The notes beneath the pieces are model-generated. The model searched no databases, was not told the DNA's origin, and saw only the letters and a program-made list of their open reading frames with translations. The position numbers were made by a program, and so were the translations under genes. From positions 1 to 64,000 of IMG/VR virus record IMGVR_UViG_3300046660_000488: a stretch of 64,000 nt of DNA. One strand, 5' to 3'. Below are positions 29,396-45,253 of this stretch, one piece after another (position 1 is the first letter of the stretch; each line of letters starts with the position of its first letter).

Positions 29396-29929
29396 CTACA
29401 GTTTTGAAGTTTTCACGTGCGAGAGGCAAGACGTATCAGCTAGAAGGATATCTGCTTGCTCGGTCCCGTAATTGTCAGGGATGATCCATCCTTCAAATCC
29501 TTGACGACGAAGGTGTTGCATCAGGTCCATGGCATACTCGCGCATACCGTTTCCGTCATCGACGCCTTCGTATTCGGCGTAGTAATCCATGATGGATCGG
29601 GTGAGAACCGCGAGACGGACCGGCCGTGAAACCGTGTACGTGATCAGTCGAGGCTTTCCGTCTTGATCAGACCAAGTAGAAAAATACTTTGCTGTATCAA
29701 CAGAGTTGGTTACCCACGAGAAATCATCGAGGCCATTACGCTCGTCGAACTTGGCGTTTGTTCCGTGATACACCGTCGTTCCTTTCTGAAGAACGTACTC
29801 GTCCGGGGCCGGAGGCCCATCGTCCTCATCTTCATCCTCATTGTCGTAACCGTCGTCATCACGGTCGTCGCCGTACTCTTGGAGGTTCAGGCTCTCCATG
29901 AGGGAGATAAAATCACGAAACTGGCTCAT
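29396..29929 (-). CDS. late, putatively virion-packaged ADP-ribosyltransferase-like protein
   Basis: TAAATA 5 nt before ATG; MSQFRDFISLMES leader; VYHGT, WVT...A.YF, GFEGW. Confidence 0.6.
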   Translation of the reverse strand: MSQFRDFISLMESLNLQEYGDDRDDDGYDNEDEDEDDGPPAPDEYVLQKGTTVYHGTNAKFDERNGLDDFSWVTNSVDTAKYFSTWSDQDGKPRLITYTVSRPVRLAVLTRSIMDYYAEYEGVDDGNGMREYAMDLMQHLRRQGFEGWIIPDNYGTEQADILLADTSCLSHVKTSKL

Positions 29930-29987
29930 GCCCGTATTTATGTGGTAAATAGGAATTGCGGACCATCCCGGTCCGAGGAGAAAAGTC

Positions 29988-30683
29988 ATGAAAAGGCTTC
30001 TTGAAATCCGCTCCGCTGAAGGCGGCGCCGATTCCCAACTGTTCGTCCAAGACCTGACCAAGTCGTACCTGCGTCTCTTCGCTCGCAAGGGCTGAAAGCA
30101 CCGCGTCGTTCGGGAACGGCCGTCAGACGCGGGCCTCTACGAGATCACCATCGAAGTCATTGGCTCTGGGGTCTCCAAACTCGAAAATGAAATCGGTGGC
30201 CACCGCATCCAGCGTGTGCCGCCAACAGAAAAACGGGGCCGGGTTCACACCAGCACCGTGACTGTCGCTGTCGTCGATCCTGACGTCGCGGTGTCGGACG
30301 TCTATGCCAAGCGCTCAGACAAAGACTTCCGCATCGAATGGTTCAGCGGCTCCGGCGCGGGCGGTCAACACCGCAACAAGCACCAGAACTCGTGCCGCGT
30401 GCACCACATCCCCACTGGAGTCTGTGAAGCACGTCAGGGCCGTGAGCGTATCTCCAATCTGAAGGACGCCATGGCCGCCATCAACGTCACCCTCGACAAG
30501 ATGGAGCGCGGGGATGTCGGGGCCACCTTGGCTTCGGTTCGCAAGGACCAAGTCGGGAGCGGAATGCGCGGCGATAAGACCGTGACAATCCGTTTCCAAG
30601 ACGATAAAGTGGTGCACGAAAATGGAAAAGCCATGACCGCCACTCGTTATATGAAGGGCTTCATGGACGATGTGTGGAGCTAA
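29988..30683 (+). CDS. RF1-like class I peptide chain release factor with in-frame UGA (30093-30095), probable readthrough
   Basis: LLEIRSAEGGADSQLF...RKG*KHRV continuing in the same frame to E.GGHRIQRVPPTEKRGRVHTSTVTVAV and SGAGGQH.NK; GAGGAG SD. Confidence 0.85.
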
Positions 30684-30685
30684 TT

Positions 30686-31129
30686 ATGGCGCGTTGGGAA
30701 ATCGGGGTCGCGAGCACCACCAGTGATGAGACCAACTGGACCGGTGAATACGTGCTCGCCAACCACGAAGGCCAAGCGCTTGAGCAGGCGGAGTTCAACG
30801 GGTACTATCGCAATGTGCGCGTGCGGCCGGAGCAGATTGACGTCGCTCCGGCCTTCGACCCGGACACAGCCTTCACGACCCGATACGCTTACATCGACCA
30901 GTCGAAACCGTTTGGTGACGGCTTCACCGGCGTTCGGATCGAGGAAGACGGGAAACCGGACAAGATCATATACGCCATCGACCCCTCTGGCGCGCCAAAG
31001 GTAGAGCCTGAGCCCGAGTACGATCTTCTTGACTTGCATGGCAAGACGATGGGGATCATGGCCATCATCGCGAGTGCTTGCTTTGTGCTCGGAATGCTGG
31101 TAGTCGGGCTCACTCAACTGTTTAGGTGA
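30686..31129 (+). CDS. hypothetical protein with C-terminal TM helix
   Basis: ORF immediately after the RF stop codon. Confidence 0.65.
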   Translation: MARWEIGVASTTSDETNWTGEYVLANHEGQALEQAEFNGYYRNVRVRPEQIDVAPAFDPDTAFTTRYAYIDQSKPFGDGFTGVRIEEDGKPDKIIYAIDPSGAPKVEPEPEYDLLDLHGKTMGIMAIIASACFVLGMLVVGLTQLFR

Positions 31130-31132
31130 CCC

Positions 31133-31711
31133 ATGAAACTGATCGTAACGACCGTCGAGAGCGTCGAGCCTTGGGGCGAAAAGCTGTCCCTCGTGAAGGT
31201 GGCCGGTGTCGAACACACCGTCGTCGCCAACCGTAAGGACGATGGTTCGTTCCGCTGGGAAGTCGGCCAACCGGTCGTCTACGTCCCCGAGAACGCGATC
31301 CTGCCGCAGGACGTCCTGCTCCTGCGCGGGTACTGGGAAGCCGGAGCCAAGAAGGGCATGCTGGCCAGCGGCAAGGGCAACCGGGTCAAGGGTCGCACCT
31401 TCGGCAAGGTCACGGCCGAGGACGGCACGGTCACCGATCCGGGCGTCGAGTCCAAGGGTCTGCTGTTCAAGGTCGATCCGAAGTTCACTGACACCGGCCG
31501 GAAGATGAACGTCAGCCGGGTTCGGGTGGACAACGACCTCACCGTCGTCGGCGATCCCACCGAAGAATACACCATCGACTTCGACACCAAGACCATCGGC
31601 GGCGACTATCACTCCGAAGGCTTCTCGGGCAAGCAGGTCGTTGTCTTCAAGAACGTCCAGATCGGCGACGACGTGACCGAATTCTTCGGCGCCACGGAAT
31701 TCACCGGCTAA
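31133..31711 (+). CDS. stand-alone OB-fold (tRNA-binding / RNA ligase N-terminal-like) protein
   Basis: VG..VVYVPE.AILP, RVK...F, S.GLL, GDDVTEFFG. Confidence 0.6.
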   Translation: MKLIVTTVESVEPWGEKLSLVKVAGVEHTVVANRKDDGSFRWEVGQPVVYVPENAILPQDVLLLRGYWEAGAKKGMLASGKGNRVKGRTFGKVTAEDGTVTDPGVESKGLLFKVDPKFTDTGRKMNVSRVRVDNDLTVVGDPTEEYTIDFDTKTIGGDYHSEGFSGKQVVVFKNVQIGDDVTEFFGATEFTG

Positions 31712-31733
31712 CCGTTGATCTGGTGACCAAATG

Positions 31734-31762
31734 AAAAGGCTCCCCAATCGGGGAGCCTTTTT
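31734..31762. terminator. bidirectional intrinsic terminator
   Basis: AAAAGGCTCCCC-aatc-GGGGAGCCTTTTT. Confidence 0.85.
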
Positions 31763-31764
31763 AG

Positions 31765-31995
31765 TTCGGTGAACGAGATTCGTCGTTGACCCGACACAAG
31801 ATACGGTTAACTTAAGCGCCAGCCGCGCCCCGGCTGAGACTTGAGCCGCAGCCAATGCGTTCCAGTCCGCAGAGAAAGCAGGATCGGTCTCGAAGGCCCG
31901 CCGGAGCCGCCCGGCGGGCCTTCACACGTGCGACCTTACGCGCCCCGAGCTTCACCCACACAAAGCTTGGTAGGTAGGTCGTCCACCCGTGGCTC
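31765..31995 (-). ncRNA. candidate late structured RNA
   Basis: TAAATA on the minus strand at 31996-32001; no credible ORF; 13-bp GC hairpin plus nested stems. Confidence 0.4.
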
Positions 31996-32005
31996 TATTT
32001 AGACG

Positions 32006-32037
32006 AAAAAGCCCGCCGCATGAGCGACGGGCTTCTT
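32006..32037 (-). terminator. intrinsic terminator
   Basis: AAAAAGCCCG...CGGGCTT hairpin; T-run on the minus strand. Confidence 0.7.
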
Positions 32038-32083
32038 CAGATGGTGCTACAAAACAGCACACCCCAAGGTGGAGTTACCGGTG

Positions 32084-32341
32084 TCAGCGAATCTTGCCGA
32101 GGAGTCGGTTGGCGCGGGTCAGGATCGCGGCGACGTCTTCGGCCAGAGCGTCGGTCTCGCCGATGCGCTTGATCTCGCTCAGAACCTGAGCGACTTCGCG
32201 CTCGATGCGCTGGACTTCGACATAGGTGAAGGCCAGCTTTTCCAGTTCGCTCTTGCGAGCCTTGGTCTGGATGCCGCTCAGGATGTCGGCGAAAGTGGCG
32301 GTCTCGGCGGTGGGAACAGCAGCGGCAACGGCGTCGGTCAT
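32084..32341 (-). CDS. hypothetical protein (paralog of 32429-32725)
   Basis: SELEKLA..Y...EIKRIGET. Confidence 0.7.
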   Translation of the reverse strand: MTDAVAAAVPTAETATFADILSGIQTKARKSELEKLAFTYVEVQRIEREVAQVLSEIKRIGETDALAEDVAAILTRANRLLGKIR

Positions 32342-32428
32342 GAAATGGCTCTTCTGAATTGGTGAGCGAATGAGGCCCTATGGTTAGCAGCCGTTAGGCG
32401 CCCTTGCAAGCATTTCGTTTACGAGATT

Positions 32429-32725
32429 TCAGAGGCGGAACGGCAGGCTTGGCTCAAACGCACGCCATTTCGTCGGGACCATGTCCGGATCGCCAGCCGT
32501 GGCGTTCTGCGCGCGGCGGTAGACGTCCCAGACGATACCTTCAGGCGGATGGCCTTCGGTCTCGCCGATACGCCTGATCTCGGCCTTCAGCGGGTCCAGA
32601 ACGTTGCGGATGAACTCGTCGATGCTGTGGTAGGCGTTGGCGAGGTTTTCGAGGTCGCTGCGGCGGTGCACAAGCGATTGCTCGGCAAGCACCTTCTCAA
32701 AATCGGTCATGACAAAATGGCTCAA
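32429..32725 (-). CDS. hypothetical protein (paralog of 32084-32341)
   Basis: SDLENLA..Y...EIRRIGET. Confidence 0.7.
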   Translation of the reverse strand: MSHFVMTDFEKVLAEQSLVHRRSDLENLANAYHSIDEFIRNVLDPLKAEIRRIGETEGHPPEGIVWDVYRRAQNATAGDPDMVPTKWRAFEPSLPFRL

Positions 32726-32769
32726 AGGAAATATCCCTTATGCCTAACATGTCGTTTACCAAACTGCAA

Positions 32770-34437
32770 TTAATCTGCGCTTTGGCCCTTGAGCCATTCG
32801 TAGAAATCTTGGATCGTCAGACCGTGATGGTGGGGCTGCTTGATCATCGACGGATCGAAAATCATGTAGGTCCACGCGGCCTTGGCGTTGGCCAGCTTGC
32901 GGATTTCAATGGTCTCGGGGAATTTGATGCCGGTGGCGCCCAGCGCTTTCAGGTGATCGACGAACTCCGGCTGGTCCAGCAACCACCACCAGTGAGCTTG
33001 GATCAGGCTGGTCGTTGACGTTCCGTATTCCTCCTGCACGAGACGCAGGCCCAGCTTGCGAACGCTGACCGGCGATCTCGCGTAGTCCAGCACCTTGCTG
33101 GTGTCCACGTAGCAACGGAGCACGTCATAGTTGGCCCCGCTCTCAGCGCGGTTCGAGCCGAAATAGTTGGCCAGTTCCTTGCTGTCGGTCAGGAAGACGC
33201 CTTGGTTCTGAACCGTGCGGATCGACCCGAGGAACCCACCGCGCTGGCCCTTGGTCAGAGCAAAGCCGCTGGCCTTGATCTCGGCCGCCAGATGGCGCGG
33301 TGTGCCGTGGTAGAGGGGCGTGAGACCTTCCAAGGGTTTCTGGGCTTCCTCGCGCTTCTGCATCAGCAGAGCGTTGAGCGCTTGCAGCTTGTCCTTCGGG
33401 GCTCGACGCAGGCTGTCGGTGAACGCCTCGTAGCTGGACATGTCGAGACCAGACATATCGGGAGCATCCTCGGTGACCGGCTCCTTGAACATGTCGCCCA
33501 GTTCGCGACCGGTCAGGCCGGTCCCGTACTTGGTGTTGAACGTCACGTCGTCGCTGTTGAAATAACGACGCAGGCATTGCTCGACATTCACCGTGTCAGG
33601 AACCCCAACAACCGCGACGGTGTCGTCATACGGGCTGAGGCTCGCGTCGATCCGCTGCTCGGTGTCGTAGGGAATATGCAAGGCAATCGCGCCCTGAGCG
33701 TGGATCGCATATCGGGCGACCCAGAGGTAGATGTCCGCACCGACGACGAGACCCCGCAGGTCGCCGGTTTGGCACAGCTTCGTTATGGCTTTGGGGCTGG
33801 GGTTCTTGTAGGCGCGAAATCGCGGGTCAGCGGCCGGAAGCTCAGCTTCCGTGATCGCCTGTCCTTTGAATTCCTTGACCCACTGCATGACGCGCGGCTT
33901 GACCGACGCCATGGAATCTCGCCACTCGCGGTTCCGCCGGAAGAATGCCGGATCATGCGCGTGTGCGCGATCTCCAAGAGCTTTGACATCTTCAGCGTCG
34001 ATGTTCAGATCGACCACCGTGCCGTCTTCGAGCTTCAGAAACTGGTGGTCCCAGCTTCCTTCGATTTGGCCGCCGAACAGTTGCTGCGCGAACAGTGATG
34101 TGAACTTGCAGGAATACGACAGATCGGCCGGTTCCGGCGCGTAGCGTTCCTTCGCGCGCTCTTTCCATTTGGCCATCGCGAACTCGCGAGCCTTGGCGAT
34201 GTTCTCCGGAGTGGGCTCCAGCAGGCCAGCCTCTTCGGTCATCAGCTTGGCGATCCGGGGCTTGAACAGCTTCTGGTCGCCCTTGTCGGTCTTCAGGACA
34301 GGCTGGTTGTTCTTGTCCTTCGTGAAGCCCTTGACCTTGGCCTTGCGGTTCTTGAACTTGCCGACCAATACAGTGTCACCGACCTCAATGTCAGGCAACT
34401 CCAGAGTTTCGGATTCCAAGATTTCTTTCCAGCGCAT
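32770..34437 (-). CDS. late multidomain internal-virion-like protein with C-terminal ART-like domain
   Basis: TAAATA 4 nt before ATG; MRWKEILESE; LYHGT...GVFLT...A.YF. Confidence 0.7.
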   Translation of the reverse strand: MRWKEILESETLELPDIEVGDTVLVGKFKNRKAKVKGFTKDKNNQPVLKTDKGDQKLFKPRIAKLMTEEAGLLEPTPENIAKAREFAMAKWKERAKERYAPEPADLSYSCKFTSLFAQQLFGGQIEGSWDHQFLKLEDGTVVDLNIDAEDVKALGDRAHAHDPAFFRRNREWRDSMASVKPRVMQWVKEFKGQAITEAELPAADPRFRAYKNPSPKAITKLCQTGDLRGLVVGADIYLWVARYAIHAQGAIALHIPYDTEQRIDASLSPYDDTVAVVGVPDTVNVEQCLRRYFNSDDVTFNTKYGTGLTGRELGDMFKEPVTEDAPDMSGLDMSSYEAFTDSLRRAPKDKLQALNALLMQKREEAQKPLEGLTPLYHGTPRHLAAEIKASGFALTKGQRGGFLGSIRTVQNQGVFLTDSKELANYFGSNRAESGANYDVLRCYVDTSKVLDYARSPVSVRKLGLRLVQEEYGTSTTSLIQAHWWWLLDQPEFVDHLKALGATGIKFPETIEIRKLANAKAAWTYMIFDPSMIKQPHHHGLTIQDFYEWLKGQSAD

Positions 34438-34507
34438 GCTTTATTTAGTGCATGTAATTGATGCTGGGTTGTAGTATTCATCTACAACTCTTAGGCATAT
34501 TCGCTAC

Positions 34508-35209
34508 ATGACTGCTCCCCCGATTCCGATCCATCAACGCATTGTAACTGCCGCGTCTCGTAAGGTCGATGCCGTTACACACCAGATGCTTGGTCGCAAG
34601 AACATTCGCACGATGAATGTTTCGGTTGAACAAGGTTTGGAAAACGACTACGAGCTTTCAACCGAAATCGTCTCCGTGGTCAGCGACCAGATCGCCGTGG
34701 AATGCGCGACCGAAGCGCTGGCCAAGGCCAGAGCCCTGACCCACCGGGATGCCTTCAAGATCGCGTGGGTCGATGATCTATCAATCGGCGATTGGGCTGT
34801 GGAACGCCGGGCTGAAAATGCTCGTTTCATCGCGGCTCTGTTGAAGCACACCACGCGCGAACATCACGACCAATCGGATCGCGTGGTGTTCATGTCGCCC
34901 ACCGTCTACAGCATTCTGGCCGCGTTCAAGGTGATCAGCATCCTAGACGGCGACGAGGCAAAGACCTTGGACGACGACGCCTTCCTGCAATCGCGTGGAA
35001 CGTTCAATGGCGCCAAGGTGCTGGTAGAGACCGGCGCTGGGCCATACGACGCTGTGGTCGTGGCCAAGGAGGGATGGCTGACCTATGCGGGTGAGGGCCT
35101 GAGCGCCAGTCCGGCCGGGTCAATCGTTCTGGATCGAATTGTTGAGGTCGATCCGTCGAAGGTGGTCATTCTGCTGACCAATTCCGATTTCCATTCTGCC
35201 GAAGGCTGA
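34508..35209 (+). CDS. truncated major-capsid (gp23/gp24)-like paralog
   Basis: A.SRK, ELSTEI, VFMSPTVYSIL, GTFNGAKVLV resemble T4 gp23 P-domain segments. Confidence 0.45.
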   Translation: MTAPPIPIHQRIVTAASRKVDAVTHQMLGRKNIRTMNVSVEQGLENDYELSTEIVSVVSDQIAVECATEALAKARALTHRDAFKIAWVDDLSIGDWAVERRAENARFIAALLKHTTREHHDQSDRVVFMSPTVYSILAAFKVISILDGDEAKTLDDDAFLQSRGTFNGAKVLVETGAGPYDAVVVAKEGWLTYAGEGLSASPAGSIVLDRIVEVDPSKVVILLTNSDFHSAEG

Positions 35210-35211
35210 CG

Positions 35212-35886
35212 TCAGGATGACGCGCCAGCATCCTCACCGATGTTGGCGCTGTCATCGTCGTACGTGCCAGCGTTGAAGATCGACTTGACTTGGTTCGGGT
35301 TGAACACGCCGAACGTCAGGTGACCGTCTTCGATCATCTGCACGCCATCGAAGCCGAACACGTCGAAGATGCTCCGGATGATCGCCGCGCCTTGAGCGCC
35401 GAACATCGACGTCGAGTGCAGCCAGAAATCGAAGCGGTCGTAATGCGGGCCGCTCTCTTCCATCCGAGCGTAGTATCGAACCTGATCAATCAGGGCGCTC
35501 AGCTTCTTCGACACGTCGTCGTTGATCGCAAAACCGTTCTCCATGGCCTGCTCGGTCATGGCGTAGAAGAATTCGCCAACCGTCACTGTCTTGGATAGGC
35601 CCAAATCTGCATTGAACGGGTTCTCGATCCGCATGTAGAGCGGGATGACGTTCGCGTGGCCTTGGCCATAGTCGTCGCGCATCTGCGCGTAGTCGTTGGC
35701 CAGTTCGTTGTTGACGCTGGCCCAAACCATGCCCTTGAACGAGTCGAAGGTCTGCCCCGTTCCGTGGAACAGGACGAGAGGATTGCCGCTGCTGTCTACA
35801 GCCTTGCTGTTGCGGAACCAACGCTTGAACGCATCCGAGAACGTGCGTTCATGGTGGCGTTCGACGATCTCGATGAACTCGCGCAT
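35212..35886 (-). CDS. ART-PolyVal-like ADP-ribosyltransferase-fold protein
   Basis: MREFIEIVE; FKRWF..SK.VD..G.PL.LFHGT; A.DYA; VIPLYMRIENP; GFDGV; F.P.QVKS. Confidence 0.75.
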   Translation of the reverse strand: MREFIEIVERHHERTFSDAFKRWFRNSKAVDSSGNPLVLFHGTGQTFDSFKGMVWASVNNELANDYAQMRDDYGQGHANVIPLYMRIENPFNADLGLSKTVTVGEFFYAMTEQAMENGFAINDDVSKKLSALIDQVRYYARMEESGPHYDRFDFWLHSTSMFGAQGAAIIRSIFDVFGFDGVQMIEDGHLTFGVFNPNQVKSIFNAGTYDDDSANIGEDAGASS

Positions 35887-35887
35887 C

Positions 35888-36850
35888 TTATTGCCCCGTG
35901 CCAGCGTTGCGGCGCCGGGCGCGGCCGTTGTCCAGTTGGTTGGCGGTCTTGCCAGCTTCGACGAACTTGACCTTGAAGGGGCTGGCCTTGAATTTCGCGA
36001 TCAGAGCCTGATACTCGGCCAAGGCCTTGTCGTCGTAGTCGTTCCACCACAGTTTGTCGCGATCCGCCGGTTCGGGGTCAGCGTACTTGGCCGGGATCGC
36101 CACGACGATCTGGGTGGACGGCGGGACTTTCAGGGTCTCGTTGGGGACCAGCCATTCGGCTTCGTCCGCATAGACGTTGGCTTGACGAACGACGGCGCCA
36201 GACACCGCCGGATACCACTTCGAGCGGTTCTGCGGCGAGAAAAAACGGACGTACTCAGTGCCGTAGTAACCGGCGGCCTTGGCCGCCTGATAGTAGAGGT
36301 TGGCGTAATCGGCGATGGACGACAGGCGAAGGCCGTTGGCTTCATAGTCACCGAAGCTGGCATCATCGACGGCCGGATACTTCGTGCTCGGAGCGACGCC
36401 CTTGCGGAGCAAGTCGGCGATGTAGGAGGCGTTGTTGGTCACGGTTCCGCCGTCACCCTGAATCTTCAGTTTCGGGAAGCACCCATAGATCAGATTGTCG
36501 CCCTGCGAGCGCGCGACGTCCTTGATGCTGAGGATGCGGCCGATGATCGCCGAGTTATTGGCGACCAGCTTTTCAGGATCGTTGTAGCCGACGCGCGTCA
36601 CGCGGTTCATCCGGACAACGTCCTGAGCGGGCATGACGAAGAAGACGTTGCGGCCGACGTTAGGGCTGAAGTTGGCCCAGATCGTCTTGGACGAACTGAT
36701 GCCCTTCACGCCGTGCAGGATGCCGGTCTGGAAGAAATCGTCGTTCAGGTGCTCTGGGCGTGCGGCCAGATAGAATTTGTCGCCGCGCAAGCCGACATCG
36801 GCGAAGCTACGTTCGAGCAGGGGCTTGGGGAGGATTTCACGAAAACGCAT
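35888..36850 (-). CDS. late internal-virion-like protein
   Basis: TAAATA 5 nt before ATG; MRFREIL...LLE; DEAEW (ExE). Confidence 0.7.
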   Translation of the reverse strand: MRFREILPKPLLERSFADVGLRGDKFYLAARPEHLNDDFFQTGILHGVKGISSSKTIWANFSPNVGRNVFFVMPAQDVVRMNRVTRVGYNDPEKLVANNSAIIGRILSIKDVARSQGDNLIYGCFPKLKIQGDGGTVTNNASYIADLLRKGVAPSTKYPAVDDASFGDYEANGLRLSSIADYANLYYQAAKAAGYYGTEYVRFFSPQNRSKWYPAVSGAVVRQANVYADEAEWLVPNETLKVPPSTQIVVAIPAKYADPEPADRDKLWWNDYDDKALAEYQALIAKFKASPFKVKFVEAGKTANQLDNGRARRRNAGTGQ

Positions 36851-36858
36851 GCCCGTAT

Positions 36859-37074
36859 TTAGGGTCGCCAGAGGTGCTTTCGTTTCCGGGTTTTGACCAC
36901 GACCTTGCCATCATCGTCCACGTACATTCCGACGTAAACCTCTTCCTCACCAGCCTCGCGTTTCTCGCGGACCATCTGCTCGCCGTTGACGATCAGGTCG
37001 CACAGGACGCGGATAGTCGCGGCCGTCAGGATGGCGAGGATCGTGACGCCGACGAATTGAACGAGCGGGATCAT
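36859..37074 (-). CDS. small membrane protein
   Basis: N-terminal TM; ATGA coupling. Confidence 0.55.
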   Translation of the reverse strand: MIPLVQFVGVTILAILTAATIRVLCDLIVNGEQMVREKREAGEEEVYVGMYVDDDGKVVVKTRKRKHLWRP

Positions 37075-37400
37075 TCGGCGACCAAGCCTTCGAAATTCTC
37101 CATGTTCAACTCGTCGGCGCCGTAGATGCCGATTGCCCGGCGAACGAACGAATTCCACTGCGTCAGGTGCGGGCGGCCCATGTAGCAGCAGCGGATGACG
37201 CAGATCAGGGCGTCCATGTTAAGGTCCGCCGGATTCGTGCGCTCATAGAAATCGTCGATGACGCTGAACTGGCCGTCCACCATCAAGTCCTGAAGCGCAT
37301 TGAAGATAATGCACACCTGACCCGTGGTTAGCTCGTCCAGTTCAGCAGGAAGCAAGGCCTCCCAGTCAGTCGTATTCGTATTCAGGTCGGGCACGATCAT
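37071..37400 (-). CDS. hypothetical protein (start uncertain)
   Basis: ORF filling the gap in the operon. Confidence 0.5.
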   Translation of the reverse strand: MIVPDLNTNTTDWEALLPAELDELTTGQVCIIFNALQDLMVDGQFSVIDDFYERTNPADLNMDALICVIRCCYMGRPHLTQWNSFVRRAIGIYGADELNMENFEGLVAE

Positions 37401-38214: not shown

Positions 38215-38346
38215 AACGGTCTCCTTCTAAGTTTTCAGACGAGTTCTATACTACAGGAGCAACCACAGGTCAATGGGCTAAAAGCCATTATTTGCAACGG
38301 GGTTGAACCCATAAATAGAGGTCAACTTCATCCAGAGGACGACTTC

Positions 38347-40176
38347 ATGGGCATGGTCTATCGCGGCGGTTTCCGCACCATTACGGGTCTCACGCACCCC
38401 TCGCCGGTTCCGGGCGTGACTTCGCGTTTCATCCCCAACGGCATCGGCTTCCGTCCGGGTGGCGGCCAAGTGATGGCCACGTGCAGCAACATGACCGCAG
38501 TCGGTTACATTGCCAACGGCCCGAAGGTCAACGGCACGGTCAACAACTTCGACGGCAAGGTTGACATCTATCAGACCGACGTTGATGGCGCCATCGTCAG
38601 CAAGATCGTCGAGATCACCCCGGACCCGAACACCTTCTATGCCAAGGCTGTTCCGCAGGGCATCTGGTTCTCGCCTGACTCCAACTACATCGCCATCAAA
38701 TGGTCGATCACCGGCAACACAGCAGCAACCGGCATCTATGTCTACAGCCGTAGCAACGCCGACTTCACGCTGTCGCAGTTCATCCAGTATGGCAACTCGC
38801 TCATCTGGCATTCCAACAGCATCAACTTCCTCGTCACGCGCACGACCGGCCAAGGCTATCCGCAGATCGGCCGCGCTGATCTTGGCGCTCCGCTGACCAC
38901 GCTGGCCAATGCTTCGCCGACGCTGAACCTTGGCATCCAAGGCTTCCAGTGGGCATGGTGTGGTGATGACCTGCTCGGCGTCTATGCCGACTCGGTTGAC
39001 GCCAGCAAGAACAAGCTGGTGACCTATCGCAAGGGCGCGGCCAATGCCGTCAGCGCAACCCGCCTGTCGTATGGCGCTTTGGTTCTGGGCGGCGCGGGCA
39101 ACACACGCATTCTGGGCCTAAACGAAACCAACCGCGTCGTGCTGTACGGACCGAACGCGGCCATCAACTTGATCAATGACTACAACTACGCCAACGGCGT
39201 GCTGACCGCGCGTCCGGGTCCTTCGGTCAAGAGCGCGACGACCTACGGCGCCATCAGCTACTCGAAGACCAAGAAGCGCATCATCATGGACAACGGGACC
39301 GAAACCCGCATCTTCCAAGATGTGGGCGGCGTGTTCACCTCAGTGTCCAGCAGCAAGATCGCGGTCGATTACGGCGCGGTCGTAGACATCAAGCAGAACG
39401 AAACGTCTGGTGCTGTCATGGTGCTTGGTACGGATGAAATCACGACCTACCAAATCCCCAGCGTCGGTTTCTCGCCGGTCAACAACACCAAGCGCACCGG
39501 CGCCAACCAGTTGATGTACTCGTGGGATTTCCAGACCAACATCAACCCGACCGTCGAGACCAGCTTCGGCTCAGCACCGACCATGGTGGTCAAGGGTTCG
39601 CCGACCATCGCTCCGGCGCCGGGCAACGCGGGCAAGAACGCGCTCTATCTGGGCACGGCTGGCGTGGACATGATCGCCCTGCCGCGTCAACGCGATCTGG
39701 AGTTCATGTACAAGGCCTACACGCTGGAATTCTGGGTCTACCAGATCGCCAAGACGGCTCCGGGCATGATCATCGGCGACTCGGCCAACCGTGGCCTGCA
39801 ATTCACCAGCAGCAGCAGCACGTCTTCGACTGTTCAGGTCTCCACGCTCGGCCAGACTTCCACGTCGGCCGGTTGGTCCAGCAATGGCATCACGGTCAAC
39901 AAGTGGCACTTCGTGTCCATCGTCATGAACGGCACGACGCTGACGACTTACCTCAATGGCTATCAGGGATCGGGCACGACGGTGTCGATGCTTCCGTTCA
40001 ACGGCACATCCTACTATCCGTCTGATCTTGACTGGGCTTATTTCTGCCTTGGCGGCAAGGTCAACGCTGACGGCTCGGTGGCCGGTAGCGGCTTCAAGGG
40101 CTATCTGCGCGGCGTGAAGCTCTACAACTACGCCAAGTCCTACACCGGCATCCCGTTCGCTCTGCCGACGTTCTAA
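38347..40176 (+). CDS. tail fibre / receptor-binding-like protein (beta-rich, C-terminal LamG domain)
   Basis: TAAATA at 38312; FSPDSNYIA propeller-like blade; YTLEFWVY...WHFVSIV...YLNG...F.GYL. Confidence 0.75.
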   Translation: MGMVYRGGFRTITGLTHPSPVPGVTSRFIPNGIGFRPGGGQVMATCSNMTAVGYIANGPKVNGTVNNFDGKVDIYQTDVDGAIVSKIVEITPDPNTFYAKAVPQGIWFSPDSNYIAIKWSITGNTAATGIYVYSRSNADFTLSQFIQYGNSLIWHSNSINFLVTRTTGQGYPQIGRADLGAPLTTLANASPTLNLGIQGFQWAWCGDDLLGVYADSVDASKNKLVTYRKGAANAVSATRLSYGALVLGGAGNTRILGLNETNRVVLYGPNAAINLINDYNYANGVLTARPGPSVKSATTYGAISYSKTKKRIIMDNGTETRIFQDVGGVFTSVSSSKIAVDYGAVVDIKQNETSGAVMVLGTDEITTYQIPSVGFSPVNNTKRTGANQLMYSWDFQTNINPTVETSFGSAPTMVVKGSPTIAPAPGNAGKNALYLGTAGVDMIALPRQRDLEFMYKAYTLEFWVYQIAKTAPGMIIGDSANRGLQFTSSSSTSSTVQVSTLGQTSTSAGWSSNGITVNKWHFVSIVMNGTTLTTYLNGYQGSGTTVSMLPFNGTSYYPSDLDWAYFCLGGKVNADGSVAGSGFKGYLRGVKLYNYAKSYTGIPFALPTF

Positions 40177-40182
40177 ACAAGC

Positions 40183-40217
40183 AAAGGCCCGCTGGTAATT
40201 ACTCCAGCGGGCCGTTT
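40183..40217. terminator. intrinsic terminator between convergent units
   Basis: AAAGGCCCGCTGG-taattact-CCAGCGGGCCGTTT. Confidence 0.75.
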
Positions 40218-40390
40218 GCCGTCTCACTCTGCTATATTGCCGGTTCCGTCTCTCGGATGCTCCGGCCGGAGCATTCCGAGGTTCTTCACCACTATGCGCT
40301 GGAGGGAGTCGAACCCTTCAGCTTCCAGACTTGCACTGCGCTTCAAGCAGAACCCTACTACCGTTCAGGTGGGTGACCTCGTAGACAAGC
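40218..40390 (-). ncRNA. candidate tRNA-like ncRNA
   Basis: TTGCAC-N17-TATATG promoter; paired termini; D-like, anticodon-like and AGGG-TTCGACT-CCCT T-arm hairpins; no CCA end. Confidence 0.6.
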
Positions 40391-40521
40391 CTCCATATAG
40401 CACCACGACATCGTGGGTGCAACCCCTCTCGTAAACGAAAACAATACTTCAAAACTGTGCTTGACGTTCCAAGCACAGTGTAGTAGAAGCTTGTTCAACG
40501 TCATCAACACGGAGGCCTCTC

Positions 40522-40938
40522 ATGTCGCTCGGTAAAACTCTCGCCACCCAAGCTGACGAACGCGCCGCCGCCCATATCGCCGCCGAGCACGCCAAGTCCG
40601 TGGCCGCGCTGGCGAAGATCAAGGCCGACAAGGCTGCGGTCACCGCGTTTCTGGCCACCGTCCGCGCGGCCATCGAGTTCGCCGCCGATACCTCCACCAC
40701 CTACAAGTCGCCGACCACGCAACGAGAGCGCGGCGACGCCTTCAGCACCTATTCGTGGAAGGAACGCACCAAGGACGTTCCCTACGCCAAGGGCTCGTGG
40801 GAAGACCCGGCCAGCCCCTACTATCCCGAGTGGAAGGAATTCGCCGACTGGGCGACCTCGGAAGACCTGAACCCGCGCCTCGTCTACGAGCACGACGGCA
40901 TGGGCATGGAGTCGTGGTACGTGGTGCGGATCGACTAG
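40522..40938 (+). CDS. hypothetical protein
   Basis: GGAGG SD; TTGACG-type promoter upstream. Confidence 0.75.
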   Translation: MSLGKTLATQADERAAAHIAAEHAKSVAALAKIKADKAAVTAFLATVRAAIEFAADTSTTYKSPTTQRERGDAFSTYSWKERTKDVPYAKGSWEDPASPYYPEWKEFADWATSEDLNPRLVYEHDGMGMESWYVVRID

Positions 40939-40940
40939 CC

Positions 40941-41171
40941 ATGAGCGAGGTCCACATCAACAAACGGGTGGCGATCTCGGCCTTGGCCCTCAAGGCGGGG
41001 ATCAAGCATCTGCACGACAACGGGTTCAACGGCGCGGATGAATTCAACATCCGCTCGACGACCTACCGCGTCTATTTCGTGGATTTTCTCCGCGAAACCA
41101 TCCAGTCTTCGGACATGCCGCCGGAGGCCATTCCGGTCCTCGAAGGCATGATCAGCGAACTGGTGCACTAA
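40941..41171 (+). CDS. hypothetical protein
   Basis: ORF in operon. Confidence 0.65.
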   Translation: MSEVHINKRVAISALALKAGIKHLHDNGFNGADEFNIRSTTYRVYFVDFLRETIQSSDMPPEAIPVLEGMISELVH

Positions 41172-41172
41172 C

Positions 41173-41505
41173 GTGGAAGACCGAACGCCCGAAGGCTACC
41201 TCGACTGGATGCGGGAATCCAACCCGAACATCGTCCACATCGAGTTGATCGACGACGAGCGCTGGGTGATGATCGAGCGCTTGATGTACCACTACACGAT
41301 CAAGACGGGCACGGTGAATGACTTCTTCACCGGCTACGAGGATCGCTGGTGCATCGCGAACCTCCAACGGGCGCTGATCTCGTTCGCAGAATGGAAGACC
41401 CGTGGCTTCGAAGGCGAGCCCACGCTGTGGCATCGTCATCCCAATTCCGGGCGGCGGCGTGATCAAGACAACCCGGTCGCAGCAACCGAACACATCGCGC
41501 AATAG
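41173..41505 (+). CDS. hypothetical protein
   Basis: ORF in operon (EP..WHRHP..GRRR). Confidence 0.7.
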   Translation: MEDRTPEGYLDWMRESNPNIVHIELIDDERWVMIERLMYHYTIKTGTVNDFFTGYEDRWCIANLQRALISFAEWKTRGFEGEPTLWHRHPNSGRRRDQDNPVAATEHIAQ

Positions 41506-41513
41506 GAGGTCCC

Positions 41514-41660
41514 ATGCTTTCGTCTCTACCAAAGCCCACTGAGGTTCCTCTGGCGACGTATCGTTTCTTCTTGCGGTTCTGGGGAGAGGTCGGCGATCTA
41601 CTAACGAAACCGTGGCCGAAAGCCAATGCGTGGTTCAATGCCAATGTCAAAGATGGCTAA
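41514..41660 (+). CDS. small hypothetical protein (48 aa)
   Basis: AGGAGG SD; fills the gap between neighbours. Confidence 0.55.
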   Translation: MLSSLPKPTEVPLATYRFFLRFWGEVGDLLTKPWPKANAWFNANVKDG

Positions 41661-41943
41661 GCGCAAAGTCTGGCGCCGTCGATCCACTAAGCCCAACACC
41701 GTCGCGGTCTACTATGGTCGCGACGATGATGGGGCGATTGGCTTAATCGGCGGATGGGGCGATGGAGCACGCAGGGGCGACGCGATGTTCCTGATGTGGG
41801 CGCTGGGCGAAGATCGCAACCGGCCGTCGTTCGAGACCTTCCCCGGCCTGAAGAAAGAACCGTCCATCCTCGCCGAGCTTGAGGCGAGAGGATACGACCT
41901 GACCACCCTGAAGATCAGCATCGAAAGGAAGCAAGAGCCATGA
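41653..41943 (+). CDS. hypothetical protein
   Basis: EL..RGYDLTTLK.SI motif. Confidence 0.65.
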   Translation: MAKRKVWRRRSTKPNTVAVYYGRDDDGAIGLIGGWGDGARRGDAMFLMWALGEDRNRPSFETFPGLKKEPSILAELEARGYDLTTLKISIERKQEP

Positions 41944-42125
41944 GCATCATCGCCGACCTCAAGAGCCTTCAGGCTGGTTTCGATAAAGAAACTCGTGACG
42001 CCATCACCGCCTCCAAGGCGCTGACCGGCGCCGCGCGCGACGATCAAATCCGCGCATCGGTCGCCGCCTTCCATAAATCGCAGGGCGTCGCCGCCGCGAT
42101 CACGCTCGTGGAAAATGCAGTCTGA
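41940..42125 (+). CDS. small hypothetical protein
   Basis: ATGA-coupled ORF. Confidence 0.6.
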   Translation: MSIIADLKSLQAGFDKETRDAITASKALTGAARDDQIRASVAAFHKSQGVAAAITLVENAV

Positions 42126-42136
42126 AAAATAAGTGG

Positions 42137-42166
42137 TTGACGAAAACGTCCCACTCAGGATAAATA
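42137..42166 (+). promoter_or_regulatory. promoter of the leader peptide/tRNA-Thr operon
   Basis: TTGACG at 42137-42142 and TAAATA at 42161-42166. Confidence 0.7.
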
Positions 42167-42171
42167 AGAAC

Positions 42172-42213
42172 ATGAACCGGATGACCACACGAACGACAAC
42201 CACCATCGCCTGA
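42172..42213 (+). CDS. Thr-rich leader peptide MNRMTTRTTTTIA (ThrL-like)
   Basis: 6 Thr codons within 7 consecutive codons; near-leaderless; directly upstream of three tRNA-Thr genes. Confidence 0.8.
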   Translation: MNRMTTRTTTTIA

Positions 42214-42261
42214 AGCGCATTCGCGCGCAGGTCTCGATGGTTATTGTGGGTTGTTTCTTGT

Positions 42262-42336
42262 GCCGGTGTAGCTCAGGGGTAGAGCGGAACTTTCGTAAAG
42301 TGATTGTCGGGGGTTCGATTCCCTCCTCCGGCACCA
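42262..42336 (+). tRNA. tRNA-Thr(CGT), atypical
   Basis: Cloverleaf with CCA; loop TT-CGT-AA; U-U in acceptor stem and only 3 Watson-Crick pairs in anticodon stem. Confidence 0.85.
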
Positions 42337-42359
42337 GAAACAACCCACATCCTTGTTCT

Positions 42360-42445
42360 GCCAACGTGGCTCAGTGGCGACAGCACCGGCTTTGTAAGCC
42401 GCCTCCGCAAGGACACCGTGGGTTCGAGTCCCACCGTTGGCTCCA
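42360..42445 (+). tRNA. tRNA-Thr(TGT) with long variable arm
   Basis: GCCAACG/CGTTGGC acceptor, loop TT-TGT-AA, variable hairpin TCC-GCAA-GGA, GTGGG-TTCGAGT-CCCAC, T-CCA. Confidence 0.9.
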
Positions 42446-42458
42446 ACTTTCTTGATAT

Positions 42459-42534
42459 GCTGGCGTGGCACAGTTGGTAGCGCGCTATACTCGTAATATA
42501 GAGGTCATCGGTTCGAATCCGGTCGCCAGCACCA
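42459..42534 (+). tRNA. tRNA-Thr(CGT)
   Basis: GCTGGCG/CGCCAGC acceptor, CTATA-CT-CGT-AA-TATAG, T-loop TTCGAAT, A-CCA. Confidence 0.93.
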
Positions 42535-42939
42535 TCAACTACTCTTTCCTTCAGCATAGCGCACACGCCTAATGTGGCGTCCATTCCCACGGTTCTTGTT
42601 CCGATACGTCGGCGTGAGCGAATGACAGTTGCAGCACAAAAGCCGCAGGTTGCTAAGCGCGTGATTGTCGGCGTTCCCATCCGCGTGGTCAACCTCGACA
42701 TCAACTGGGCGTTTTGTCTGATCCCAAACGCATTCCGGGTCCATGCAGATGTTACCATGCGTAACCAGCATGTATTTGCGTAGGGTCTGTGGATGAACTC
42801 TCACCCCGCTTTTGATTAGCTCGACCGTTGCAGACCACTTGTGTAAACCTTGGCAAGCATTATTACAATACTTACCGTGCGTGTTCTTTTGACGTATTTT
42901 CTCTGTGCCACACTGAAGGCACGTGAATGTTTCAGACAT
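42535..42939 (-). CDS. HNH endonuclease
   Basis: CxxC Zn motifs; VEVDHADGNADNH.LSNLRLLCCNCH. Confidence 0.9.
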   Translation of the reverse strand: MSETFTCLQCGTEKIRQKNTHGKYCNNACQGLHKWSATVELIKSGVRVHPQTLRKYMLVTHGNICMDPECVWDQTKRPVDVEVDHADGNADNHALSNLRLLCCNCHSLTPTYRNKNRGNGRHIRRVRYAEGKSS

Positions 42940-42978
42940 TCACAACTATAGTTCAGATGACTATTTTCCGTCGATTTG

Positions 42979-44067
42979 TTAGCGCGTCGGCGCCCGAACG
43001 CCCTTGTGGATGTCGCTGGCATCCTCGTCGTCGCCCGCCACGCTTTGGGTCGAAACCCGGAAGCTGTTGGCCTTTTCGACATCCCAGAGCACGAACGCCC
43101 GGTGCATGTGGCCACCCAGTCCACGAGGACCCGTGCCGCCCAGTCGCACGCCGCCTTGGTATTCGAGGCCGGTATAGCCAGCATTCAGCAGGTCTTGGAT
43201 CAGAAGCTGCTGGCGTTCCTTGTCTCTGAACACGAAGTAGCCTGAGTGCGTGCCGTTCCAGAAGAAATCCAGCGTCGGGTTCTCGCCCTTGCCGCCAAGC
43301 TGATGGTCGGTCCACGCATAATACGTGCCGTGTTTTTTGTAGCCTTCAATGAAGTCCCAGAACTTGTTCCCATTGCTGTCCGAACCGTAGTGACGCAGGT
43401 CGAACGGACGCTCTTCATCGCCCTTGGCGGCGCGCACGAACGCCTTGTAGACGATGGCAAGTTGATCGTCGGTCAACGGCCGCTCGGCGTGCATGGTGCG
43501 CTCCAGATAGTCGGCAGGGACCTCGAACGTGGTCACGACGCCGGGACGATCTGCCTTGGTCAGGACGAACTCGCCCGTGGTCAACTGGGTGACCCGGACC
43601 TTGCCCCTCAGCGCCTCGAAATCCTTCTTGGCCTTGCCGAACAGGTTCTGGAGAACCTTGCGTTGGCCAGCTTCGAACTCTCCCCGAAAATCGTCGCCAC
43701 GGGCTGCTTTCTCGGCAGGGTCCATGTTCCAGAACCGGCCGTTGGCGTCGGCGCGGTACTGCTGGAGCACCAGATCAAGCTCGTACTTCGTCTTCATGAC
43801 GTGGACGAGGTAGGATTGGATAAGGTCTTTCTTGGATCGGGCGCCTTCGCCCTGATCGGTGCGCTTGCGGAACAGGACGTTCTCGTCGGCCGCCTTGCTG
43901 GCGGTGTAATCTCGCGCGATGGACGGGCTGTCGGTCAAGTACAGGCCCATGCCCAGCAGGGCGTCATAATCGGTCTTGTCGATGTCGAACATTTCGATGG
44001 AGGATGCGTCGCCACGATACAGGGTGACTGTGCTTTTCTCTTCGAACAAGGCAATGAATTCGCGCAT
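42979..44067 (-). CDS. late internal-virion-like ART-fold protein
   Basis: TAAATA 4 nt before ATG; MREFIALFEE; LYRGD, G.GLYLTDS...A.DY, GYTGLEY. Confidence 0.7.
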   Translation of the reverse strand: MREFIALFEEKSTVTLYRGDASSIEMFDIDKTDYDALLGMGLYLTDSPSIARDYTASKAADENVLFRKRTDQGEGARSKKDLIQSYLVHVMKTKYELDLVLQQYRADANGRFWNMDPAEKAARGDDFRGEFEAGQRKVLQNLFGKAKKDFEALRGKVRVTQLTTGEFVLTKADRPGVVTTFEVPADYLERTMHAERPLTDDQLAIVYKAFVRAAKGDEERPFDLRHYGSDSNGNKFWDFIEGYKKHGTYYAWTDHQLGGKGENPTLDFFWNGTHSGYFVFRDKERQQLLIQDLLNAGYTGLEYQGGVRLGGTGPRGLGGHMHRAFVLWDVEKANSFRVSTQSVAGDDEDASDIHKGVRAPTR

Positions 44068-44114
44068 GTCGTATTTAGGTTGACATTTGGTTAACCAAAC
44101 CATAAATACAGACG

Positions 44115-44153
44115 ATGACCATCAAGTTCTACATGGAGTTCGACACCTTTTAG
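44115..44153 (+). CDS. candidate short upstream ORF MTIKFYMEFDTF
   Basis: ATG 6 nt after TAAATA; stops 26 nt before the next gene. Confidence 0.4.
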   Translation: MTIKFYMEFDTF

Positions 44154-44179
44154 GTTACTTGACCTGAGAGGAAACGAAC

Positions 44180-44566
44180 GTGAAATCCCACTACGAGAAG
44201 GCCCAAGGCTACGGAGACGAGCCGGGGCAATACCGCTACAGCCTTAGCTGCGGCGGCTACCACCGTGCAATCCACACCTTCCCCGAACTGCGCGACCGTG
44301 ACGCCGTCATCTACGACGACGAGCTGCGCGACCTGAAGGTTTTCCCCCGCGCCAGCCGCAGCCACGGGGTGCTCGACGCATGGAACGACTTCAACATCAA
44401 GTCCAACTACGGCCGTAGCTGGAAGCGCTACACCAAGCACCGCAAGCAGTGGATGGTTGGCGACGATCCCAAGTCGATCTCCCGCAACGAGAACAACCGG
44501 CTGCTCTGGTCGGCCTACATGATCTACCTGAACATGGGCGGCGATCTGGACAAATACCGTTGGTGA
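44180..44566 (+). CDS. basic hypothetical protein (RSWKRY...RKQW)
   Basis: GAGGA SD with GTG start. Confidence 0.7.
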   Translation: MKSHYEKAQGYGDEPGQYRYSLSCGGYHRAIHTFPELRDRDAVIYDDELRDLKVFPRASRSHGVLDAWNDFNIKSNYGRSWKRYTKHRKQWMVGDDPKSISRNENNRLLWSAYMIYLNMGGDLDKYRW

Positions 44567-44584
44567 GCATGGCCTAAATACGGC

Positions 44585-45253
44585 ATGCGCTTCTTCCAAC
44601 TCGTTGAAACTCCGACACTTCCCCCAGCCTTCAAGGCGTGGTTCGGGCAGAGCAAGGTCGTGGACGCGAGCGGCCAGCCGCTGCGCGTCTACCACGGCAC
44701 GGAAAAGGACTTCGACGAGTTCGGATACGGCATCCAGCCCGGCGCCGATCAGATCGGCTCAGGTTTCTATTTCACCACCGATCCGGCCGAAGCCAGCGGC
44801 TACGCCGGTGGAAGCCAAGGCGCTCGCGTGATCCCGGCCTATCTGTCGATCCAGAATCCTCTGGACGCGGACAAGGTCGGAACCCTGACGCCCGTGCAGG
44901 CGGCCAAGATCATTCAGATGTCACCGCGTCTGGAGGATGTCTTCGGAGACTGGGACGACGGCTCGGGGAACAAGCGTCAGGTGATGGCGACCATGGCCAA
45001 CACCTACGCCTTCCAGAACGGCAACATCGTCCGGCGTCTGTTCTCGATGGCCAACGACATCTACGGCGACCAGCATGCAGACGCCTTCAACAAGGCGCTG
45101 CATGTCGTGCTCGGCTATGATGGCGTGTTCAAGACGCACGACGACTGCGTCCACTGGGTGGCGTGGTTCCCGCAGCAGGTGAAGGCCGCGACCAACAGCG
45201 GGACATTCGACCCGGCCAACCCCAAGTTCACCGAAGCCTTCAGAAGGCCTTAG
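44585..45253 (+). CDS. ART-PolyVal-like ADP-ribosyltransferase-fold protein
   Basis: TAAATA 4 nt before ATG; FKAWFGQSKVVD..G.PLRVYHGT, GFYFT, ASGYA, VIPAYLSIQNP, GYDGV, P.QVK. Confidence 0.8.
   Translation: MRFFQLVETPTLPPAFKAWFGQSKVVDASGQPLRVYHGTEKDFDEFGYGIQPGADQIGSGFYFTTDPAEASGYAGGSQGARVIPAYLSIQNPLDADKVGTLTPVQAAKIIQMSPRLEDVFGDWDDGSGNKRQVMATMANTYAFQNGNIVRRLFSMANDIYGDQHADAFNKALHVVLGYDGVFKTHDDCVHWVAWFPQQVKAATNSGTFDPANPKFTEAFRRP

Follow-up and report, generated by a model that had tools for sequence, protein, structure and literature searches.

What do six genes scattered between positions 29,396 and 45,253 of a phage contig have in common, and what might their products do? The window analysed here comprises the first 64,000 bases (bases 1-64000) of one 578,292-bp contig with a GC content of 0.59, IMG/VR record IMGVR_UViG_3300046660_000488. 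Five of the six genes, here called g1 to g6, start directly behind a TAAATA box, and all six proteins open with a short N-terminal peptide, here called the tag. An original prediction, made from the letters of the window, read them as a dispersed family of leaderless late genes for capsid-targeted effectors resembling ADP-ribosyltransferases (ARTs). We conclude, with a probability of roughly two in three, that the six genes belong to a tag-defined set of late effectors that are packaged in the head, trimmed by a protease and injected. ART-fold enzymes are most likely the biggest class of this set.

TAAATA boxes fused to start codons

Four of the junctions lie on the minus strand: g1 (ATG at 29929; ATAAATA-CGGGC-ATG, box 29935..29940, 5-nt gap), g2 (ATG at 34437; CTAAATA-AAGC-ATG, box 34442..34447, 4-nt gap), g3 (ATG at 36850; CTAAATA-CGGGC-ATG, box 36856..36861, 5-nt gap) and g5 (ATG at 44067; CTAAATA-CGAC-ATG, box 44072..44077, 4-nt gap). 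The fifth, ahead of g6, is on the plus strand (ATG at 44585; CTAAATA-CGGC-ATG, box 44575..44580, 4-nt gap). There is no separate TAAATA for g4, whose ATG (35886) lies 1 nt past the g3 stop codon (TAA-G-ATG). The original description of the five TAAATA-N4/5-ATG junctions and of the coupling between g3 and g4 is thus correct. The accompanying claim that the junctions lack a Shine-Dalgarno (SD) site also holds, since a gap of 4-5 nt is too small for one.

Of the 14 TAAATA hexamers on both strands of the window, five are these junctions. The whole genome contains 180, making TAAATA its most frequent A/T-only hexamer (median of such hexamers 38). Genome-wide, 40 TAAATA have an ATG after a gap of 5 nt and 15 after a gap of 4 nt, where 2.7 are expected per gap, and a second, broad excess lies 23-30 nt ahead of ATG. 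The box mostly follows C or A, giving an extended consensus of (C/A)TAAATA-c-g-G-c-C-ATG, and ATG-CGC is preferred immediately after it.

The box is not peculiar to the six genes or to ARTs. It stands in the same leaderless position ahead of untagged genes whose products are three virion structural proteins (one of them 3275 aa long), a tail-fibre-like protein and a gp25-like subunit of the baseplate wedge. Other genes have the box farther off, with a leader of 27-50 nt: the protease and scaffold genes, a core gene, a 905-aa gene, and two genes of 599 and 393 aa that are labelled by position rather than identity (portal position and vertex-protein/gp24 position, respectively). Virion genes on both strands are preceded by the box. 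In addition, a gene for a late sigma factor of the gp55 type lies at 301.2-302.2 kb (phrog_12791 2.9e-80; T4 gp55 tblastn 3.2e-6). Because the same box lies upstream of head, baseplate and virion genes and a gp55-type sigma factor is encoded, TAAATA is best read as the recognition box of this factor, i.e. as a late promoter.

The T4 late promoter is an 8-bp TATA box at -13 to -6 that is read by gp55 without a -35 element (PMC2988020). With a 5-nt gap and the box at the T4 position, the A of the ATG therefore falls at +1, and the mRNA would be leaderless. By this analogy, about 55 genes would give leaderless late mRNAs that start at or beside the A of their ATG. The same box-ATG junction stands ahead of g3 and g5 homologues and their neighbours on each of the three contigs of relatives that were read at the DNA level: a 569,661-bp NCBI contig of a metagenome-assembled genome (plus a Logan copy of that locus), a 259,433-bp JGI contig and a 27.9-kb Logan contig. 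The relatives came from a protein word search; an IMG/VR related-loci search with g3 and g5 as single proteins returned nothing.

Late boxes also occur as back-to-back inverted pairs (TATTTA...TAAATA) 5-30 bp apart. In the window, a second, inverted TAAATA at 29946 (+) lies beside the g1 box, the pair spanning 29935-29951, and a divergent TAAATA at 44103 (+) lies beside the g5 box, the pair spanning 44072-44108. A further inverted pair at genome 468385/468413 serves two leaderless genes that diverge, with just 28 bp between them. The TAA of the g3 box doubles as the stop codon of an upstream 99-aa open reading frame (ORF; 36859-37158, -), so that promoter and upstream gene end overlap.

A short N-terminal tag resembling the T4 capsid-targeting sequence

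The tag follows the pattern M-R-x3-5-hydrophobic-x-E, is 8-10 residues long and is found on about 35 proteins. Its frequency was determined with the regular expression (regex) MR-x(2-5)-[LIVMF]-x-E on a crude codon-usage call of about 700 genes, whose start codons we picked ourselves. The regex matches the start of 21 of 50 TAAATA-leaderless genes and of 16 of 650 others (Fisher p = 5e-17). It fits 37 of 87 Met-Arg at N-termini but only 12 of 214 within proteins (p = 1e-13). The Glu is residue 9 in 20 proteins, residue 8 in 10 and residue 10 in 4 (34 in total). There are a few variants, such as MSQFRDFISLME in g1. The N-termini quoted in the original prediction are present in the sequence as given.

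Beyond the tag, the proteins that carry it are mostly unrelated. BLAST groups only {g4, g6, 107699, 470531}, {g5, 313508} and a small GNAT-related set. The six genes are hence not one paralogous family, as had been supposed: BLAST links g4 with g6, and g5 with a gene outside the window. The tag, like the promoter, extends beyond these genes and beyond ARTs.

The tag occurs on genes that are SD-led or coupled (g4, 470531 and 550658), and structural genes behind the same leaderless promoter are without it. We therefore rejected the idea that the tag is a by-product of a leaderless start. It is kept in 19 g3 and 14 g5 homologues at 30-60% identity, and both AlphaFold models show it as disordered (g5, residues 1-9; g3, residues 1-14).

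In T4, internal head proteins all enter the core via a capsid-targeting sequence (CTS), the gp21 protease cleaves after Glu, and Alt is cut at ITE-6 (PMC5694885). The sequence of the CTS in T4 is MKTYQEFIAE, with a single gp21 cut (PMC8442874). The internal proteins of T-even phages are diverse anti-defence proteins with only the CTS in common (PMC3012670). The tag is likewise an N-terminal peptide of about 10 residues that ends in (L/I)-x-Glu and is common to unrelated proteins, and both a gp21-type (Peptidase_S77) protease and a scaffold core are encoded in the genome. Given its similar length, position and terminal Glu, we take the tag as the probable counterpart of the T4 CTS.

The head genes themselves are of T4 type. 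A gp21-type prohead protease of 212 aa is encoded at 333.9 kb (333863-334501; Peptidase_S77, PF03420, E 4.5e-25; phrog_207 2.6e-57) and the major capsid protein Gp23 at 336 kb (Pfam E 3.9e-91; phrog_138 8.8e-93), with a scaffold-like gene between them (phrog_237 1.7e-5). Two small core genes beside the protease encode the N-termini MRIDEFV... and MRSILEQAF.... The record has direct terminal repeats (IMG/VR) and is 100% complete according to CheckV. The source is a complete 578-kb phage genome from a rhizosphere metagenome, placed in the T4 superfamily by its gene content. A megablast search of an annotated phage collection with the region gave no match, so there is no near relative in that collection.

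Three proteins, encoded at genome 188955 (-), 482159 (+) and 548514 (+), have a variant tag with a six-residue extension, M-x-R-S/G-D-D-M-R-x-L/I-L-D-x-I/V-E. Two of these three genes have TAAATA with a 24-27 nt SD-containing leader.

ART-like proteins encoded in the window

Five of the six genes had been credited with a (Y/F)HGT or YRGD ART-like core, and all five cores were found: VYHGT in g1 (aa 53), LYHGT in g2 (aa 375), LFHGT in g4 (aa 39), LYRGD in g5 (aa 16) and VYHGT in g6 (aa 35). The active site of ART-PolyVal consists of H in strand 1, Y in strand 2 and D in strand 5 (PMC5512222). The gathering cut-off of the Pfam model (PF18760) is 31.2 bits. A Pfam search of the six proteins revealed no ART family besides ART-PolyVal and DUF3990. 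Neither the R-S-E signature of the clade of T4 Alt and VIP2 nor sequence similarity to Alt, ModA or ModB was found; g5 has a strand-1 Arg, but its profile aligns to ART-PolyVal.

Two proteins are firmly assigned to ART-PolyVal by their profile matches. g6 (44585..45253, +; 222 aa) consists of the tag MRFFQLVE and an ART-PolyVal domain with a complete H-Y-D triad (VYHGT, GFYFT, HDD; Pfam 1.5e-23, 84.6 bits; phrog_21376 1.4e-23). g4 (35212..35886, -; 224 aa), which is coupled 1 nt behind g3, has the tag MREFIEIVE followed by an ART-PolyVal domain (Pfam 1.5e-16, 61.8 bits, above the cut-off; phrog_21376 4.7e-25). In the alignment its triad is H-W-D, with H41 in LFHGT, W in strand 2 and D in IEDG.

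The predicted structure of g5 (42979..44067, -; 362 aa) identifies this protein as an ART by fold. The tag MREFIALFE is followed by an ART fold that a helical insert interrupts at aa 79-156; LYRGD stands in place of YHGT and is followed by GLYLTD. Its triad aligns as R-Y-Q, and most homologues have R-Y-D. The model has a predicted local distance difference test (pLDDT) score of 85, and its best solved match in VIA-align is a chain of the cyanophage A4 pre-ejectosome (Z 12.1; PMC12002296). ParT (8.8), diphtheria toxin (8.8) and PARPs (7-8) follow, and ARTs make up more than half of the top 50. A Foldseek search of BFVD gave 17 matches at E<=1e-3, several of them named ART-PolyVal-like, down to E 1e-7. 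Foldseek against the PDB found nothing for g5, the ART fold surfacing only with VIA-align and BFVD, and a PDB sequence search with the family profile returned noise only. In hhalign, the g5 family matches the ART set with a probability of 94, partly via the tag; its Pfam ART-PolyVal score of 17.0 bits is sub-threshold.

The largest of the six, g2 (32770..34437, -; 555 aa), is a polyvalent-type protein. Behind its tag MRWKEILESE come three parts: a KOW-like module (about 50 aa, aa ~12-66), a domain in the middle (aa ~75-200) and, at the C-terminus, one that resembles ART-PolyVal. Pfam matches are KOW (0.016) and ART-PolyVal (0.034; 15.3 bits, below the cut-off). The C-terminal family aligns with the ART set in hhalign across the whole domain, without involvement of the tag (probability 72.6, E 3.2e-5, 146 columns), and its triad is H-F-E. 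This alignment suggests that the C-terminal domain is probably a divergent ART. The 76 metagenomic homologues of g2 share single modules with ART-PolyVal, Acb1, GNAT, GH19, ParB and NT5C proteins. The KOW-like module is N-terminal or internal in these relatives, and 44 of the 76 begin with the same tag.

g1 (29396..29929, -; 177 aa) has the tag MSQFRDFISLME, an acidic linker and a small ART-like domain, and is probably a divergent ART as well. Its Pfam ART-PolyVal match (E 0.031, 15.5 bits) covers profile positions 8-115 of 140 and is below the family cut-off, and its triad is only partly placed in the alignment. The closest folds to its ESM Atlas model are RES NAD+ phosphorylases (template-modelling (TM) score 0.63) and an ART-PolyVal cluster (TM 0.55).

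The fold of g3 (35888..36850, -; 320 aa) is less clear. The tag MRFREILPKPLLE (family consensus MRxxEIIxE) is followed by a domain without a Pfam model, and the protein has no Pfam or PHROG match. An alignment of 19 homologues has R22 (LRGD), S52 and E230-x-E232 as family-invariant residues. The model (pLDDT 84.7) aligns in VIA-align with Tpt1 (Z 6.6) and DarT (Z 4.5-5.0), below the noise guide of 8 for this tool. In the Atlas, DarT and DUF952 all have TM below 0.5 (DarT 0.30/0.45), and Foldseek found nothing in the PDB. In hhalign, the g3 family showed no relationship to the g5 family or the ART set beyond the tag. A profile search retrieved 349 relatives of the g3 domain, some of them in proteins of 600-2500 aa and fused to Acb1, DarA_C or a Tpt1-like ART.

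The ART fold proposed for the whole set is thus confirmed or probable for five genes, and g3 is only weakly ART-like. The comparison with known ART structures that the original prediction called for speaks for g5 (ParT and diphtheria toxin, Z 8.8) and g1 (RES, TM 0.63) and falls short for g3 (Tpt1, Z 6.6).

Other tagged proteins

At least a dozen of the tagged proteins are ART-like. Genome-wide there are nine ART-PolyVal matches, and about a dozen tagged proteins have an aromatic-(H/R)-G motif right after the tag. Iterating a hidden Markov model within the genome from four strong ARTs gained only one gene. Most ART-PolyVal paralogues, like g6, retain H-Y-D.

The remaining tagged proteins are diverse. 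One is Acb1 (genome 137774-138298, L010; tag MRAIEIFE; 7e-37), a phosphodiesterase that counters the cyclic-oligonucleotide-based antiphage signalling system (CBASS). Others are a SleB-type cell-wall hydrolase (Hydrolase_2, 3e-19), three GNATs, a SprT-like peptidase (1.7e-12) and a protein with a weak ParB_N match. The effector subfamilies are each conserved across relatives at 40-60% identity. The set does include ARTs, as predicted, and the label 'ART effectors' is too narrow for about 35 proteins that also comprise Acb1, GNATs, the peptidase and the hydrolase. Acb1 is also found fused to the g3 domain in the metagenomic proteins P0123 and P0124.

A proposed route from late promoter to host cell, and its alternatives

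We infer packaging, cleavage, injection, the start and timing of transcription, and the NAD-dependent activity and targets of the proteins. A gp55-type sigma factor acting at TAAATA would produce leaderless late mRNAs from about 55 genes, and the head genes would be read from the same box with their 27-50 nt leader and an SD site. The tag would let each protein attach to the core scaffold while the prohead is being assembled. Cleavage after the Glu by the gp21-type protease would remove the tag, and the mature protein would stay in the head with the DNA and be injected with it at the next infection. The cargo of the window would be chiefly of ART fold, with g4 and g6 as ART-PolyVal proteins, g1, g2 and g5 as divergent forms and g3 of doubtful fold. 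Upon entry, the injected ARTs may modify host proteins or nucleic acids using NAD+. Cargo from elsewhere in the genome would include Acb1, which degrades CBASS signals, as well as the GNATs, the SprT-like peptidase and the cell-wall hydrolase.

Several observations weigh against this proposal. g3 is not demonstrably an ART; its resemblance to Tpt1 and DarT is weak, and its R, SSS and ExE residues are suggestive without a profile that backs them. The third catalytic position is Q in g5 and G in 480416, where the Asp is lost, and some members with a non-canonical third residue may, as read from the alignment, be inactive. T4 Acb1 is not known to be packaged. Only two sequencing runs contain the stretch, both of rhizosphere metagenome DNA. 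Finally, so short a tag invites chance matches: the loose regex fits 5.6% of internal Met-Arg. Together with start codons picked by the analyst, this could suggest that the whole pattern is an artefact of wrong starts and a loose motif. That explanation is refuted by the 5-nt spacing spike (15-fold above expectation), the tag statistics (Fisher p = 5e-17) and the junctions that recur in the three relatives' contigs. Public-database gene calls, made independently, also give homologues with the same N-termini, and we assign it almost no probability.

The genes could also be late and leaderless while their products work in the cytoplasm toward the end of infection, modifying for instance phage or host proteins before lysis. 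T4 ModA and ModB act without being packaged. The shared N-terminus would then not be a packaging signal and would instead be a feature of translation or of the mRNA, or a recombination cassette of promoter and first codons for swapping cargo. This reading would fit the adjoining, jointly conserved tag and promoter, the preference for ATG-CGC just after the box and the gene swapping known in T-even plasticity regions, and packaging is so far inferred only. The tag is, however, also found on genes that are SD-led, coupled or have TAAATA at 23-32 nt (g4, 470531, 550658, 120966 and 482649), and untagged structural genes lie behind the same leaderless promoter. Its conservation is at the protein level, with hydrophobic-x-E at a fixed distance, which fits the cleavage rule of the encoded protease. 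We regard cytoplasmic action as unlikely. Slightly less probable still is that the proteins are packaged mainly as internal filler of the head or scaffold or for DNA condensation, with ART-like folds as catalytically dead relics. The non-canonical residues of g5 (R-Y-Q), g4 (H-W-D) and 480416 (without Asp) would agree with relics, and the closest solved match of g5 belongs to a structural layer of the pre-ejectosome. Against this, H-Y-D is retained in g6 and most ART-PolyVal paralogues, each subfamily is kept at 40-60% identity across relatives, and other cargo is clearly enzymatic, with anti-defence or wall-cutting functions (Acb1, Hydrolase_2, GNAT, SprT-like).

Packaged and injected effectors therefore remain our preferred explanation. 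The injected ART arsenal originally envisaged gains from the gp55, gp21-type protease and gp23 genes, the CTS-like tag and ART folds in five of six proteins; it loses g3, and the set is broader than ARTs.

Neighbouring genes

Between g2 and g4, on the opposite strand, a 233-aa ORF (34508-35209, +) has a sub-threshold Gp23 match (Pfam 9.3e-5) that spans profile positions 158-306 of 376. The head module is far off, at 327-338 kb, and this ORF could be a capsid-protein fragment or a diverged paralogue.

Translation-related genes lie amid the effector genes. Positions 30216-30683 (+) encode a 155-aa protein with an RF-1 domain (GGQ; 1.3e-13) and positions 45473-47050 (-) a class I lysyl-tRNA synthetase (2.3e-98); in relatives, IleRS-like and ArgRS genes adjoin effector genes. 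Positions 42262-42939 comprise three tandem tRNA-Thr genes (anticodons CGT, TGT and CGT; the middle one 86 nt) and an adjoining 134-aa HNH endonuclease-like ORF (-).

Two larger genes probably encode virion or fibre proteins. One, at 38290-40176 (+), encodes 628 aa with a Laminin_G_3 (concanavalin-like) domain at the C-terminus. The other is a 2221-aa ORF (53650-60315, +) that matched only PHROGs of unknown function and has TAAATA 28 nt upstream.

Implications

Injected proteins act before any phage gene is expressed and are thus a first line against host defences, and they are hard to spot from sequence. If the tag is a true capsid-targeting signal, a simple rule (a late box, then M-R/K-x3-5-hydrophobic-x-E) would list injected effectors in uncultured huge phages. 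It would also connect the computationally defined polyvalent domains with a loading route that is already known. Should the tag stand for packaging, Acb1 would bring anti-CBASS activity into the cell along with the genome.

We speculate, at odds somewhat short of even, that a clade of T4-related soil phages of 0.26-0.58 Mb has unbundled the polyvalent arsenal into dozens of small CTS-tagged genes, most of them leaderless and late, with a gp55-type promoter joined to the ATG. Around 5% of the proteome would then enter the head and be delivered to the host as a ready-made kit for takeover and anti-defence, comprising at least 12 ARTs, Acb1, GNATs and a peptidase. On this reading, the tag on 44 of the 76 g2 relatives would make a CTS and a gp21-type protease a general loading route for polyvalent proteins. 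The kind of system is already known from the CTS, internal proteins and Alt of T4 and from polyvalent proteins. What looks new is the scale, the unbundled architecture and the fusion of promoter and ATG. Some 55 promoter-fused, presumably leaderless late genes would be unusual in a T4-type phage and would inform on translation in the host. A literature search found no description of a leaderless T4-type late promoter or regulon, and the word 'leaderless' is absent from the T4 late-transcription review.

Comparison with known systems

The gp55-dependent late promoters of T4-like phages (TATAAATA, -13 to -6) share with the box an A/T-rich element at -10 (a predicted position here), the lack of a -35 element and an encoded gp55 homologue. 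Here the core is (C/A)TAAATA, and about 55 genes have it right against their ATG, predicting leaderless mRNAs.

A close parallel to the tagged set is T4, where IPI, IPII, IPIII and Alt, unrelated in other respects, likewise start with a short peptide whose end is hydrophobic-x-Glu. One of them, Alt, is an ART packaged in the head, and the T-even internal proteins are related by the CTS only (PMC3012670, PMC8442874, PMC5694885). Both phages also have a prohead protease of the gp21 type, a gp55 sigma factor and a gp23 capsid, and the genes concerned are late (here presumed from the box). T4 has a handful of such proteins and Lys at position 2, whereas there are about 35 here with Arg. The parallel with Alt drawn in the original prediction stands for ART-like proteins with a CTS-like tag and does not extend to the clade: the ARTs here are H-Y-D ART-PolyVal proteins and Alt is R-S-E. 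Most tagged genes here are also predicted to be leaderless.

Many head-internal proteins, cleavage after Glu by a T4-related protease and ejection are also features of the ejection or inner-body proteins of phiKZ and SPN3US (PMC5694885), and would apply here. Their cleavage motif is S/A/G-x-E, often after long propeptides; the tags here are a uniform 8-10 residues ending in hydrophobic-x-E, as in T4.

Polyvalent proteins, described from phages and conjugative elements (Iyer, Burroughs, Anand, de Souza and Aravind, 2017), are predicted to be injected with the DNA, and MuF, portal-associated or RNAP modules have been proposed as their packaging handles (PMC5512222). The terms 'propeptide', 'N-terminal signal', 'KOW' and 'SH3' are absent from the text of that paper. 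At least two disparate effector domains define a polyvalent protein, and g2 alone has them, g1, g3, g4, g5 and g6 being single-domain proteins that would function as the domains of polyvalent proteins do. The repertoire is nonetheless the same, with ART (H-Y-D), GNAT, 2H phosphoesterase (Acb1), zincin/SprT-like peptidase, ParB and peptidoglycan hydrolase. g2 is itself multidomain, and the domains of g2 and g3 recur in metagenomic proteins of 600-2500 aa. Instead of joining the domains in one giant polypeptide, the phage described here encodes most of them in small genes of their own, with a tag and a promoter for each.

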